From the NCBI RefSeq assembly GCF_006345805.1, contig NC_043002.1:96720001-96784000 (forward strand): DNA of 64,000 nucleotides. The letters are read 5' to 3'. This document shows positions 17,052 through 42,092 of the stretch, in pieces (the first letter of the stretch is position 1; each line of letters begins with the position of its first letter). The stretch comes from Octopus sinensis. Its lineage: Eukaryota. Both the position numbers and the translations under genes were made by a program. A model generated the notes under the pieces. It searched no databases, was not told the origin of the DNA, and saw nothing but the letters and a program-made list of their open reading frames with translations.

Positions 17052-17122
17052 TATAAATACGCATCAATTTTGCATTCGTTATTCTTTCAAATGTTGACAC
17101 TCCTTTCTCCTTTTTGACATAC
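17052..17122 (+). promoter_or_regulatory. Paralog B: TATA box, Inr and non-coding exon 1
   Basis: TATAAATA at 17052, TTATTC Inr (A at 17081, 29 nt downstream), GTAAGT donor at 17123. Confidence 0.75.
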
Positions 17123-17514
17123 GTAAGTGAAATTTTAAACATTTTATTTTTGTAATTAATTTATATGAAATATATACATTACTGCTTTCAATTATAACTC
17201 AGATATAGTTTTAAAAAATTAATCTATTTGTCAATCATTTTTTATAAATGTTTATTTAATACATGAAATCAGAAACGAGTCTAATATAACGATATCTAGC
17301 AATATTTTGATTTCATTTTATTGGTAAAAGAGCGGAAGAATAAGATTTATATCTAAATTAATTGTATTTTCTCTGTTTTTGCATGTTAATATATGTATGT
17401 GCGCGTTTGTATCGATGAATCACTTTATCTATCTATCATTTGCTTTATAAGATACTGTATTTACTCGACACAACGAGCAGGGAGTGACGTACGTGTTAAT
17501 AGCATGCGTATTAA

Positions 17515-17932
17515 CCCATTAACTGCCAATTGTTTGTTATATTTTGTTTTGCTTTGTCAGGTGTCTTAGGAGTTAAAATAATATTTAGTATTGAAATGTT
17601 CTTCTTATGCTAATTATTTCGTAAATTATTATAATTTTTTATGAATAAATATGAATAAAAGTTTTTCGGAAAGTCTTAAATTGGGATCGCTGAAAAAAGG
17701 CATGTTTATCCTTTTCTATTCAGTTACAATAATAAACATCTGAGTTATTTTGAAACTAATGTCCTCTAAAATTAGTGAGAGCTAATAATCACAAACTTTA
17801 ATTACTAAATATTCGTAAACGCACCTCTGTAAATGCAATGTACATGAGCAATTTATTTTTAAATACAAAGAAAAACCGGCAGTGAGACTGGTTTTAGCAG
17901 ACCCCCAGATGGGGCTCATAGCAGGCAATGGG
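17515..17932. mobile_element. piggyBac-type MITE
   Basis: TTAA on both sides (17511-14, 17933-36), imperfect TIR CCCATTRMCTGC. The paralogous empty site has a single TTAA at 12192. Confidence 0.85.
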
Positions 17933-18399
17933 TTAATAACAATCCTTTATACTAGAATGTATGCTTGCCATATTGATGGTGAGATTATTCAGTATGTGAA
18001 AGGAAGCGAATGGTAATATGACTCCTAAATTATTGTCCTTGACTTTCATCCTTTTCAGGGTCGATTAACCTGAATACCAGTTGAGCACTGGGGGTCTATG
18101 TAATCGACTTACCAACTCCTCAAAATCTTTGGCCTCATGACCGTATTTGAAACGTGAGATATGGTCAGTAACAGTGGTCACCGTTATAGTTATGGGATTG
18201 TTAACAGAGAGTGAGAAAAATTCAAATTAAATTAATTAACCCCAGACATGTTCAAATGTCTAGGTTTTGTTCAAGGACTAAATGCAAGCAAAGATGCAGT
18301 TATACGTTCCCGGATATTAACAAAATTAGAGCAAGACCAAACATTAAATCTATAGCCAGTGGCAGGAGAATGCCAGATTATAAATCTAAGACATGGCGC

Positions 18400-19270
18400 A
18401 GATGAAACTGAAGTAAAAGATTGCTCTCATATTCATGCGACCGGTAACGTATATGTAAAAAAGGAAAAAACGCCAAAAGCGAATCCATGTTATGGGTGAG
18501 GTGGTCAACATTTTGAAAGTTACTCTCCTTTTAGAAATATAAAAATTTTAAATGTAATTAGATAGGTCATAAAAAGTCACGTTCTAAAACAAAACCTAAA
18601 AAAACCGGTTCAACAGAAAAAATTACGTAGACAGGTTTTCAGTGACAAGAAATACAAACGAGCCTCAAAGGAAATTTGTATGTGTAAAAATTAATAACAC
18701 AAACGTAAAATTACAATTGGATACGGGCAGTGATATCCCGATAATTAACACAGATACATGGAAAGAAAATCAGGCGACCTAAATTAAAACAAACTTCGAA
18801 AATTGCACATGGTGTTTCAGGAAAAAAATTATATTTTAAAGGCGAAATGTTTAGTGACGTTACATTTTGTGGAAAAACCTTAAAAAACAAAGTTTTATGT
18901 TGAATAATAGGACAAATTTATTCGGAACAGACTGGATAGAATTATGTAACTCATGGAACCTCATCATAAATGTTTTCTGTAAAAATGCGATTTTTTCCGC
19001 CATTACAAATAAAGCGTACAAATAAGATGAATTTTCTAAAAAGTGCACCAAAACAAAGGCGAAGTTTCGGGTGTAAGAAATGCTATACCGGCATTTAAAC
19101 CAAAACGAAAAGTACCTTTCGCAGCGTTAGAACAGACAAACTTAGAGTTAGAGAGACTAGAAAATACTGGAGTTATCCAAAATACTGGAATATTGTCAAT
19201 GGGTATCTCCAACTCTATACGATAGGAAAAAGAATAATAAAATCAATACTCGCTAGTCCAAAAAGATGAT
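18400..19270 (+). mobile_element. Degenerate Ty3/Gypsy gag-protease-RT fragment
   Basis: LDTGSDIPII aspartic-protease motif and FKPKRKVPFAALE...LERLE..GVI pre-RT motif. Confidence 0.75.
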
Positions 19271-19523
19271 GTTCTGTCACATATGCTGGGATTATTAATA
19301 GGGAGTATGAAAAATTCAAATTAAATGAATTAACATGTTCAAATGTCTACTTACACCGTATCACTAATTCCTACCTAGGGTTAATGAGGTTATCCACTGC
19401 TTTTAGGATTTGGAATAACTCCTCTGGGCAAAGTTAGCATCTCGTTCTACTTATTTTGTATGGTTTAGCTCTACTTAGGATTGACCATTTCAGCTCATAT
19501 TCTGTTTTTACCTCCCCAAGTTG

Positions 19524-19820
19524 TCATAAAAGCTTGCTAAGTAATATCACATTTAATTTAATCTTGTGCCTAAATGACGAGACGTGGTTGCAATATCGTA
19601 GCTTCAATGTTGTGGTGCAACATCCTATGTATTTGTAATTTGTGTTCTGTGTAACTACTGCACATCTATATACTATATTCCTTTCTAAGCAGGCTTTATT
19701 TAACACACATTCTCTATCTATTCTACAGTTACAACCGGCGATTTCCTTCCTATTGCTGTTACTTTTAGAGTTATTCTCACAATTGTCATTATTATTTTTA
19801 TCGCTTCCCTCATTATTCAT
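19524..19820 (-). mobile_element. Penelope-like element, GIY-YIG endonuclease fragment
   Basis: CNCR...C...CL...IVY...YIG...LKLRY.NH..SF pattern in the ORF. Confidence 0.85.
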
Positions 19821-39639: not shown

Positions 39640-40389
39640 ATACATACATACGTACATGCATACATACATACATACATATATATATAGAGAGCGGCTTAAC
39701 CACTGACAGCCGAGCGATCAAACGCACACACGTACACAAAAAATGTTTTCTACCCCTTGACGGAGGTCTTGCCAACCTGCGCCAGCACACATATATAGAA
39801 CAGTAAACACACACATGTCTCTAAGTAGATTTTTTCTCGCCCCTTATAAAACATCCAATATTCCTTAAATAGTCAGAACTTTATTCTCGGTCACAAAGAA
39901 CATCTACACACCCTCACCCACAGGAATTACCGCTGCCTGACCCGTTAAAATCTTCAACCACCGGTTCTCAACATACACTGATAAACAGTTTTGCCATGGG
40001 CTCTTAGGAGCCTAGTTCGATTTGTTTTGCTCCGCCTCTGTTCTGTTTTTGTTTTTTCCAACGGATTTCCTATATGGTCTCATTATTCAATCGGATTTTG
40101 GTAAATTGTGCCTTTCGAAACACGTGTAGAATGAAATAAAACGATTTCTGTTCAATCTTCGTTCAGCTCCATTTCTTCAATTCACCAATAATATTTTAAT
40201 TTCAATTATCCGCACCAACGCACGGTTGCAACACCATATGGTTGTACCTCCAACCGTGCTGTCTTCTGCTGTGATTTTTGCTACCAAGGTATCGGTTAAA
40301 CTTTTGATTAATCTGCTACAAGATTATTCATCTTTCTATTTCACATAATATATATATATTATATATATATATATATATATATACATACA

Positions 40390-40518
40390 TATAAGAGGGA
40401 TGACCAATAAGTGGACATCCATTACGCTAGAAATAGACTCCCTATGATCTTACTACTAAGAAAGGATTGGCTTATTTCTAGCATAATGGATGTCCACTTA
40501 GTGGTCATCCCTCTTATA
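40390..40518. repeat. ~129-bp hairpin/MITE with ~46-nt arms
   Basis: TAAGAGGGATGACCA.TAAGTGGACATCCATTA is reverse-complementary to TAATGGATGTCCACTTA.TGGTCATCCCTCTTA. A partial arm recurs at ~40670-40710. Confidence 0.85.
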
Positions 40519-40878
40519 AGTATGTAATATAATTTTTCTGAATCTTCAGATTTTTCAATATGCTAGACGACTAGTTTTAAATTGATATTAATCAAATTAA
40601 TATTCAGTTTTTCACCTTTATTATTTTAAATTTGGCGTTTGCTGAATTTTCTTGAGAACATTCCTTTCTTCTAGAATAATGGATGTCCAGTTACAGGTCA
40701 TGTCTCTTATATGTATATGCATATATATATATATATATATATATATATGATAGATACAGGTATAGATATGTATGTGTGTATGTATGAGTCTATATGCCTA
40801 TGTGTGTAATTATGTATTTCTATTTGTCCATATGTTGAAGAGAAAACAAAACTTAATAAATATATTTTGTTTTGTCAG

Positions 40879-40963
40879 TGAGATTGATCTGCCCTACAAT
40901 TCTCAACAGCTGGAATTCGAATTTAGTGGAGTTATAAATGTATTGTTTAATGGCTGTAAATTT
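40879..40963 (+). CDS. Tentative paralog B exon 4: (N)EIDLPYNSQQLEFEFSGVINVLFNGCKF
   Basis: TTTTGTCAG acceptor, open only in phase 2, which matches exon 3. Its 3' end is near-identical to 15247-15273 in paralog A. The donor (GTAAAG) is weak; an alternative donor lies at 40940. Confidence 0.4.
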
Positions 40964-41319
40964 GTAAAGATTTATATTCTTTTGTAATAAAAACTACAAC
41001 TTTATAATTAACGACACTAACCAGTTTTATTTGGTAATATCTGTTTTCTCTATATGAGGCGGCGAGCTTGAGGAATCGTTAGCATGCTTAGCGAAATGCT
41101 GAGAGGAATTTCATCACACTTCACCTCATAAGTTCAAAATCCGCCGAGATCACCATAGTCATTCATCATTTTCGGTGTCTATAAAATAATTACAAGTTGA
41201 TCAGCAGGGTCGATGTAATAGACTTAGCCTCTTTCCCAAAACTGCTGACCGCATGACCAAATTTGAAACCCATGCATGTTTTATGAATAATTGTTTTGCA
41301 TATTCTTTTACTTTTATAG

Positions 41320-41400
41320 AAAGGGAAGCAGAGGAAAATAAACCCGAAATTGAAAGCCAAACCGAAACCAAAATCAGTTTGCAATCGGAATAAGATCTAA
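41320..41400 (+). CDS. Paralog B terminal exon: KGKQRKINPKLKAKPKPKSVCNRNKI* in phase 0; AATAAA at 41448 and 41453
   Basis: TTTTATAG acceptor, stop codon, polyA signals, and a paralog at 15392. Reading frame is ambiguous (phase 1 gives KREAEENKPEIE...*). Confidence 0.55.
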   Translation, partial: KGKQRKINPKLKAKPKPKSVCNRNKI

Positions 41401-42092
41401 TCATTCTCTCGTATAATCCTCCCTGAAAATCGTGTAAGAAATAAGGTAATAAAATAAAATCAAAGCCAAATTTGCGGTCCCTTTTTGTTTTGTTTTTCCT
41501 ACGTATATACTGTGATCCTTACGATTGCTACAAACCATAAGAAGGAAAGTTTGACTAAAATATAACATTTCCTTTTCGTTTCACCAGCCAATCATCCAAC
41601 ACTTCTCGATATTCTGCATGGTTGCCATAACAGTATTCCCTGCCACTCACCTCCAGAAAGAACGGGACCTACTTTCTCTCGAAACTTCTGTTGCTTTTGG
41701 TCTCAAACTCATTTCCCAATATTTCTAAACCCACTTTTCTCCTCAACTTCCCCTATTTTTACCCACTCCCCTCACACCAATCCCATCTCATCACCACACT
41801 ACCATTTGCATTCAATACCAAAAAAACTAAAACCCCAATGCCAAAAACATCTCCACTACTATCACTTACACACAAGTATACGCATAAGCCCCTCCTCCAC
41901 TTTATTACAACTTAACATCTTTACATACACCAACACGTCCACACATACATAAAGCTTTACACTCTCACGCTAAGATGTATATATCCCAATATACTTGCTC
42001 TCTGTGCACCTACACCAATCCGGACAGATACAAACAGAAAAAATTGCATTTATTGTCTATTTTAAATGCATATATAAACACATACCTTTAAA

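Follow-up and report, generated by a model that had tools for sequence, protein, structure and literature searches.

We have analyzed a stretch of 64,000 nucleotides from Octopus sinensis (contig NC_043002.1, positions 96,720,001 to 96,784,000 of the forward strand), called here the window and numbered from its first letter. Judging from comparison with its relatives, the window holds a gene of five exons, at 17081-17122, 22446-22524, 27405-27539, 34334-34481 and 41320 to about 41475, which is the ortholog of LOC128248057 of Octopus bimaculoides. The gene codes for a small secreted cysteine-rich protein of a family found in Octopus, whose mature chain is predicted to fold as two modules similar to fibronectin type I, and whose coding exons diverge faster than the introns around them. 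The gene model and the membership of the family, taken separately, are in our view highly probable. The entire explanation, with gene model, family, fold and a mechanism of extracellular binding put forward as one joint claim, is the one that we favour on balance.

Gene structure and orthology

The preliminary description of this DNA had proposed a spliced gene, under a TATA promoter, whose product would be small, secreted and rich in cysteine, and this holds: there is an annotated ortholog in a syntenic region, and the TATA box is invariant in five promoter copies. All five exon intervals proposed at that stage are present and bounded by AG and GT, the ATG is found at 22452 and AATAAA at 41448-41458, and translation of the chain reproduces the 128 aa product that had been given for it. 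When we searched with this product a single protein was retrieved, P0001, the 128 aa 'uncharacterized protein' of O. bimaculoides LOC128248057. The comparison changed the exon chain at two points. P0001 has 49 additional residues between the signal peptide and the cysteine-rich exon of the earlier product, and a tblastn search of the window with P0001 located their counterpart at 27401-27538 (E = 9e-18), an exon that had been missed. On the other hand, the interval 40879-40963, proposed as the fourth of five exons, lies outside the coding sequence (CDS) of P0001 and is unsupported as an exon. The mature chain of the earlier product holds an odd number of cysteines, 7, against 10 in the corrected chain. 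Nor is the gene as invisible as had been thought, its ortholog being annotated in the O. bimaculoides RefSeq, although as an 'uncharacterized protein'.

Colinearity of the window with the locus of the ortholog (L001; CM046606.1, 107.125-107.170 Mb) extends over approximately 16.7-47.9 kb. The noncoding mismatch between the two is 9.4% over 9,083 aligned bases (about 90% identity), and the two species are about 10% different at a neighbouring locus of the family. Since the window is colinear with this locus and P0001 aligns to the exons, the exon chain is not a product of chance. The window product is 69% identical to that of LOC128248057, with the same exon phases and a similar signal peptide, and P0001 is the nearest relative of both cysteine exons.

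All the exons are on the forward strand. Exon 1 (17081-17122) is a non-coding 5' untranslated region (UTR) with a predicted start; it ends in GACATAC, followed by gtaagt from the donor position 17123. Exon 2 (22446-22524) opens after a tttcag acceptor with GTCAGTATG and ends in ATCA before a gtaagt donor. It contains 6 nt of 5'UTR, the ATG at 22452 and the signal peptide MTRLFPFCLLVLTAVTTFVEA, of the MTRLFPFCLL type, which differs from that of P0001 in 2 of 21 residues, and it ends in phase 1. Exon 3 (27405-27539; 135 nt, phase 1 to 1) has a tttag acceptor (TTTAG followed by AG), runs from AGTGTAAT to GTCTGTCT and has a gtaagt donor. It codes for what we call module A, KCNGCLSAGICHRYNEKWMEKSAGVCALKECQLVRRYRKIYAKSV, which retains all five cysteines of the family as well as its Trp and its E-K motif. 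Because this exon is symmetrical, it could be omitted from the first model with the frame intact. Exon 4 (34334-34481, phase 1 to 2; the third exon of the earlier chain) goes from TTTGTCG, after an aacag acceptor, to CAAAA before gtaagt, and codes for module B, FCRMHNGKCIRRRKWASYNEFGECWSYRCKITGSNSVRIESMSGGHCSQ(K), whose five cysteines and C-W motif are invariant across the family. The terminal exon opens with AAAGGG after a ttatag acceptor, and its coding part (41320-41341), read in phase 2, gives (K)KGSRGK and a TAA stop at 41339-41341. The same acceptor and phase are found in the terminal exon of P0001 (L001 34796-34814), which reads ttatag and then AAAGAGACGCTGGCCGTAA, giving (K)KRRWP before the stop, and which is joined in P0001 straight to the second cysteine-rich exon. 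The terminal exon of the 41% identical paralog P0004 is also homologous. The 3'UTR (41342-41475, the end being approximate) contains two overlapping AATAAA signals, at 41448-41453 and 41453-41458, and its sequence is conserved in the O. bimaculoides ortholog.

The corrected precursor has 125 aa, with MTRLFPFCLLVLTAVTTFVEA followed by the mature chain YAIKCNGCLSAGICHRYNEKWMEKSAGVCALKECQLVRRYRKIYAKSVFCRMHNGKCIRRRKWASYNEFGECWSYRCKITGSNSVRIESMSGGHCSQKKGSRGK, and finishes in GGHCSQKKGSRGK before the stop. The mature chain has 104 residues, 10 cysteines, an isoelectric point (pI) of 9.8, a mass of about 12 kDa and 23 K+R against 6 D+E.

Upstream of exon 1 there is a promoter module (16656-17080, forward strand) with a TATA box, TATAAAT, at 17052-17058. 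It forms part of a module of about 750 bp shared with the promoters of paralogs and is 89% identical to that of the ortholog, with counterparts upstream of P0001 and P0004. More distant copies, with identities of 65-75%, were found in the window at 10934-11589 (forward strand) and 2640-3366 (reverse strand), and at L002 7584-8342. An alignment of five promoter copies showed no variation in TATAAAT, in the donor ACGTAAGTGA or in the CATTCTTTCAA that opens exon 1, the remainder being 65-70% alike. In addition, an older model of an O. bimaculoides paralog, P0010, spans the homologous junction between exons 1 and 2. By these comparisons the non-coding exon 1 is well supported, its exact start being a prediction.

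A family found in Octopus

We searched 1.84 billion representative proteins by phmmer with P0001 and obtained 11 matches at E <= 1e-3, 10 of them from Octopus. The eleventh, P0011, a metagenomic protein of 1459 aa (E = 5e-4) with marginal bacterial-type Pfam hits, was judged to be spurious and unrelated. P0014, a further paralog from O. bimaculoides, came from a subsequent search. On the evidence of these sequence searches, the family is restricted to Octopus among the protein representatives covered. Its members are all unnamed or 'uncharacterized': LOC128248057, LOC128248056, LOC128248060, LOC128248175, LOC106872088 and LOC106872057 in O. bimaculoides, and LOC115212787 and LOC118763783 in O. 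sinensis. Four of the O. bimaculoides genes are located within 260 kb of CM046606.1 (at 107.009, 107.103, 107.135 and 107.260 Mb) in mixed orientation. Papers searched by accession, locus name, peptide fragment and topic, together with the supplements of a salivary study of O. vulgaris, did not mention the family, which is undescribed in the searchable literature and has only database entries as 'uncharacterized' proteins.

The window product is 33-49% identical to its paralogs. The nine members with both modules have the framework C-x2-C-x5-C-x14-C-x4-C-x15/18-C-x6-C-x14/15-C-x4-C-x17-C and two Trp, and the spacings of the window copy (2,5,14,4,15,6,14,4,17) conform to it. Module A is present in every full-length paralog. 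The tails past the last cysteine are short and variable, and several open with dibasic pairs (KK, KR) that could be processing sites. Two annotated isoforms of LOC106872057, P0009 and P0013, lack module A and have a 40-residue acidic or Thr-rich tail and an odd number of cysteines, five; either exon A can be skipped in the family or these models are incomplete. The net charge of the core goes from -6 to +12 across the paralogs, with two acidic cores (-6 and -3) and the window copy (+12) at the extreme, so that 'cationic', as the protein had been described at first, does not apply as a trait of the family.

Predicted fold

The comparison of predicted structures that had been recommended in the preliminary description (AlphaFold, Foldseek) was carried out on the relatives of the window protein. 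AlphaFold2 was run on an alignment of 11 rows of the family with P0001 as target, and a second time with P0004 as target. The P0001 model is all-beta, with a mean predicted local distance difference test (pLDDT) score of 82.5 and values of 90-95 over residues 31-110, and the P0004 model matches its pattern of strands. Core values lie at 90-95, around 92, in the two models. Searching the PDB by Foldseek, the first 14-15 matches of both models were pairs of fibronectin FnI modules (8-9FnI, 4-5FnI and 2-3FnI), with E = 5e-4 to 2e-3, probability 1.0 and target-normalised template-modelling (TM) scores of 0.41-0.53. A single FnI module superposes on the model over 40 residues (rmsd 2.1 A), of which 30% are identical. 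Modules A and B are in register with each other by hhalign (E = 0.015), repeating C-x6-W-x7/8-C-x4-C-x17/18-C. On this register we infer a split of the cysteines into 6+4, that is, four in module A plus an extra N-terminal C-x2-C pair, and four in module B. That the mature chain is made of two all-beta fibronectin-type-I-like modules, forming an internal repeat, appears probable from these predictions.

FnI pairs and, by prediction, the family share an arrangement of two modules in succession, about 45 residues long, where a beta hairpin lies on a sheet of three strands that holds a Trp, and a disulfide scaffold of the form C...C-x(n)-C...C. In Fn1 domains the disulfides join C1 to C3 and C2 to C4 inside each module. 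They differ in that the family has C-x4-C where fibronectin FnI has C-x-C, and an extra pair of cysteines in module A. To our knowledge Fn1 is regarded as a chordate domain and is found within large mosaic proteins, whereas this would be a free-standing two-module protein of a mollusc.

At the level of sequence no similar resemblance was found. Pfam gave nothing above threshold for the earlier product, the corrected product or ten relatives. In particular, neither the window product nor P0001, P0005, P0012 and P0014 had a hit to fn1 (PF00039) at E <= 10, and five further members had none at E <= 1. The FN1 pattern of PROSITE type is C-x(6,8)-[LFY]-x5-[FYW]-x-[RK]-x(8,10)-C-x-C-x(6,9)-C; written as a regular expression, it matched none of nine family cores. 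When the PDB was searched by sequence, the single protein and P0014, as well as the profile of the family, gave either nothing or chance kinase matches (E about 0.9). The first impression, in which no family was recognised, is in this sense borne out: the Pfam, PDB sequence and profile searches matched no well-characterised family.

Mode of evolution

We have estimated nonsynonymous (dN) and synonymous (dS) divergence by the Nei-Gojobori method between the window gene and its O. bimaculoides ortholog, over a small number of sites. The dN/dS was 0.99 overall and 0.88 for the mature part (dN = 0.228, dS = 0.258); for the signal peptide, dN was 0.044 and dS was 0. The mature dN of 0.228 can be compared with a noncoding distance of 0.10. 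Coding bases mismatched at 15.9%, versus 9.4% in the noncoding DNA that flanks them (9,083 nt; Fisher p = 1.2e-4). Identity to the ortholog is about 81% in exons A and B, 88-93% in the adjacent introns and 96.8% in the signal exon. The same pattern appears between paralogs, where the intron flanks of the cysteine exons align at 73-79% and these exons hardly align as DNA. All 10 cysteines and both Trp are kept between the window gene and the ortholog, and the three indels are all in frame. As the coding divergence exceeds that of the noncoding DNA with the signal peptide, cysteines and promoter conserved, the sequence comparison suggests that diversifying selection acts on a secreted binding protein.

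Proposed function and alternatives

Under the explanation that we favour, the mature protein would be exported by the secretory pathway, rigid through five disulfides, and would act outside the cell as a binding protein, its framework and signal staying constant as diversifying selection alters the exposed surface. Its target would itself be changing fast: a microbe, a prey or a conspecific partner. The positive charge of the window copy (+12 in the core, plus a K/R-rich tail) would add affinity for polyanionic surfaces, either glycosaminoglycans or microbial envelopes. The elements shown or predicted here include a strong TATA promoter conserved across the family, tandem expansion with gene death, and faster change in surface residues than in neutral DNA. 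With low confidence, we would place host defence or recognition slightly ahead of a salivary or venom context, and this ahead of reproductive or chemical signalling.

In a bolder version, a free-standing protein of two Fn1-like modules would have evolved in octopus, or been kept from a very old ancestor, and expanded into fast-diversifying binders of changing external targets, something that we regard as unlikely. Prey proteins reached through the saliva, microbial surfaces and molecules of the partner or the egg would be the candidate targets, and binding could proceed by beta-strand addition, by analogy with the FnI pairs of fibronectin.

Several points speak against the favoured explanation. 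The mechanism of extracellular binding is drawn entirely from fold, charge and evolutionary pattern and is tentative, rather more doubtful than probable. The Fn1 resemblance derives from predicted structures built on an alignment of 11 rows, with modest TM values for the pairs, and none of the sequence models used (Pfam, PDB sequence searches, profile comparison and pattern) supports it. The pairing of the disulfides is likewise a deduction. A dN/dS near 1 with a raised dS (0.26) could reflect relaxed constraint, a mutation hotspot or exchange between paralogs. Finally, five candidate products had no exact match in a collection of 15 billion proteins.

The protein might instead be a cationic antimicrobial peptide that disrupts membranes. 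The pI of 9.8, the excess of basic residues and the core charge of +12 would fit such a role, and the signal peptide, disulfide scaffold, fast evolution and tandem family are found in many host-defence peptides, the MgCRP-I family of Mytilus being an example of the pattern (PMC4558851). Nevertheless, the charge is not a property of the whole family, and the range from -6 to +12 among paralogs argues against generic cationic membrane disruption for the family. For a peptide that acts on membranes, a chain of 104 residues made of two rigid beta modules is large. The scans matched no family of antimicrobial peptides, the best being a beta-defensin at E = 0.25 for one paralog, and peptides of the family are absent from the supplements of the O. 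vulgaris salivary study, which dealt with antimicrobial peptides. We consider this alternative improbable.

Decay of the window copy, with the differences accumulated by neutral drift in a non-functional gene, is a still weaker alternative, quite improbable in our judgement. It would agree with the dN/dS of 0.9-1.0, with the turnover of the family, which has left a relic copy 7 kb upstream, and with the fact that no recorded protein of the source species matches the window product. The gene, however, has an intact frame, canonical splice signals in 8 of 8 cases, and both the TATA box and the polyadenylation signal kept. The 10 cysteines and both Trp are conserved despite about 16% of differing coding bases, and the lengths of the three indels are multiples of 3. 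The coding rate is above the neutral noncoding rate and not equal to it.

Comparison with named families

A midkine/pleiotrophin origin would be another way to explain the gross design of the protein. Midkine and pleiotrophin are basic proteins of about 12-13 kDa with 10 conserved cysteines, two beta domains and a basic tail (PMC3267162), a design that resembles the family in size, charge, number of cysteines, domains and tail, and in both the architecture includes a Trp after an early cysteine in each domain (PMC3267162). Their N-domain has three disulfides and the C-domain two, with heparin binding; the 6+4 split of the family is deduced from the positions of the strands. In UniRef, P0014 was automatically named 'Pleiotrophin/Midkine N-terminal domain-containing protein', a name that could not be reproduced by Pfam or by profile comparison and looks over-reaching.

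That the family is a very divergent, miple-like heparin-binding growth factor is nonetheless very improbable. The Pfam models PTN_MK_N and PTN_MK_C gave no hit at E <= 10 in any member, P0014 included, and hhalign of the family against PTN and two zebrafish midkines, taken from PDB alignments, gave a probability of 0.4%. The cysteine spacings are also different (7,6,8/13,8,3,9,9,21,9 in midkine and pleiotrophin, versus 2,5,14,4,15-18,6,14-15,4,17 in the family). Structures of both proteins are in the PDB, yet they were outside the top 50 Foldseek matches of both models, and a fast-evolving tandem array restricted to one genus is unlike a conserved growth factor.

A likeness to VWC had been suggested from the spacing of the cysteines. 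It agrees loosely with what we found, in that VWC or chordin-like repeats are, as these would be, small secreted disulfide-rich beta modules, subdomain 1 of VWC being a small three-stranded sheet (PMC6270503). Still, the predicted fold is Fn1-like, and the family models show no irregular subdomain 2 as VWC has. The VWC model (PF00093) gave a single hit among the scanned members, to P0012, below threshold (14.5 bits versus a cut-off of 27.6, E = 0.044), and the VWC motifs C2-x2-C3-x-C4 and C8-C9-x2-C10 were found in none of nine family cores. The SVWC or Vago proteins of arthropods, also small and secreted, have diversified and serve in immunity in recognition or in a cytokine-like manner; they have a single domain (PF15430) with eight conserved cysteines and four disulfides (PMC13115929), to be compared with ten cysteines in two modules here. 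Our analysis indicates that the family is Fn1-like in its predicted fold alone, and is not a demonstrable member of Fn1, VWC, SVWC or midkine/pleiotrophin.

The evolutionary pattern is that of other molluscan families. As they are described, conotoxin genes and MgCRP-I of Mytilus combine a conserved signal, a hypervariable mature region and a fixed cysteine framework, in multigene families of multi-exon genes with long introns (PMC3862624, PMC4558851). The sequence and fold of the Octopus proteins are unrelated to these, and their two-module mature chain is much larger.

A conserved element in the last intron

The rejected exon (40879-40963, forward strand) lies inside an element of about 200 nt (40827-41056) directly upstream of the terminal exon. 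This element is 75-90% conserved among orthologs and paralogs whose coding exons are barely alignable. Copies were found in the window at 40827-41056 and 15240-15357, at L001 32232-32461, and at the loci L002 (20638-20782), L004 (20106-20306) and L005 (27426-27609). Its role may lie in splicing or in regulation, or it may serve as an alternative exon.

The stretch within it is bordered by a gtcag acceptor and a gtaaag donor, and reads TGAG...AAATTT. Were the first chain the main isoform (22524 to 34334, then 40879-40963 and 41320, in frame 0), the protein would have 128 aa and a long Lys-rich tail. The window, the P0001 gene and the DNA next to the P0007 gene of O. sinensis do retain the AG, an open frame of 28 codons and the GT. 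Exon A, running from phase 1 to 1, could be skipped with the frame preserved, and it is missing from P0009 and P0013. On the other side, the CDS of the ortholog includes exon A and joins module B straight to the terminal exon, every full-length paralog has module A, and the mature chain would be left with the odd number of cysteines mentioned above. In the P0004 gene the homolog of the stretch is outside the CDS and broken: the AG is lost, 1 nt has been inserted and the donor is GC. The two relic copies have it broken as well. Between the window and the ortholog, 7 of 7 changed codons are nonsynonymous and the identity, 88-90%, equals the intron background; we estimate from the 35% GC a chance of about 13% for an open frame of 28 codons. 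A likeness between a 'DLP' in this stretch and the tail of P0004 was discarded, the tail coming from the terminal exon of P0004 and not from the homolog of the stretch. In short, we give the first chain hardly any credit as the main isoform. As far as the sequence comparison goes, the stretch is not a supported exon, and may at most belong to a minor alternative isoform. Since it lies outside the P0001 CDS, and P0004 has a broken homolog of it, the earlier 128 aa product most likely does not exist in its final 55 residues (NEIDLPY...NRNKI).

Relics, neighbours and repeats

The five-exon gene is the only complete gene of the family in the window. No further full paralogs were found in it, only one relic and one extra promoter copy, in agreement with the paralogs with turnover that had been proposed. 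The relic (10934-15453, forward strand; 10.9-15.5 kb) begins with the promoter copy at 10934-11589 and ends with a 3' copy at 15240-15453. Its signal exon (14466-14531, MTRLFPFFCLFLEVETAFIEPA) has a GC donor and holds Glu residues in the hydrophobic core, and is preceded just upstream by a (GT)n microsatellite (14380-14408). Further on there are a cluster of short interspersed elements (SINEs) at 14663-15238 and a copy of the terminal exon with an intact acceptor near 15393. Both cysteine-rich exons are missing from the relic, part of which is matched in O. bimaculoides at L001 3840-4543. A third copy of the promoter and exon 1 (2640-3366, reverse strand; 2.6-3.4 kb) points left, toward position 1. 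The ortholog of LOC128248056, a gene that in O. bimaculoides is head-to-head with LOC128248057, probably starts with this copy; coding exons of that ortholog were not found inside the window.

With a GC content of 35%, the DNA of the window is AT-rich; microsatellites and SINE-like repeats are numerous in it, and so are fragments of long interspersed elements. The introns of the gene are mostly repeat debris. In the last one there is a SINE-like repeat (41057-41226, forward strand), with other copies at 8405-8644, 14663-15238 and 42091-42329, and, according to the BLAST tables, a repeated segment (38963-39052 and 40041-40130). Intron 3 has an open reading frame (ORF) of 134 aa on the reverse strand (32205-32609) that gave no Pfam hit and looks by eye like a degenerate fragment of a mariner-type transposase. 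Downstream of the gene, fragments of retrotransposons without long terminal repeats (non-LTR) were detected at 43625-45623 and 56449-60355 by the Pfam model RVT_1 (E = 6e-31 and 6e-23, respectively), the second with two long ORFs of 600 and 670 aa. The BLAST tables also contain a segment duplicated locally in tandem (55019-55404 and 55511-55896), the period being about 490 bp.

Significance

The analysis provides a corrected gene model for a locus of a species without a matching protein in the searched collections, together with a first description of the Octopus-restricted family in its framework, predicted fold, genomic array and evolutionary mode. Fast-evolving secreted families with a fixed cysteine framework are a kind already known; what is new is one with a predicted two-module Fn1-like fold, found in Octopus only. 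When coding exons outpace their introns and the signal peptide and promoter stay frozen, this is the signature of molecules at an arms-race interface, and the family is therefore a candidate set for the study of saliva, immunity or chemical communication in octopus. Confirmation of the Fn1-like fold would bear on the origin of this type of module, and if the bolder reading were true, a supposedly chordate fold would be at the core of a cephalopod effector arsenal.

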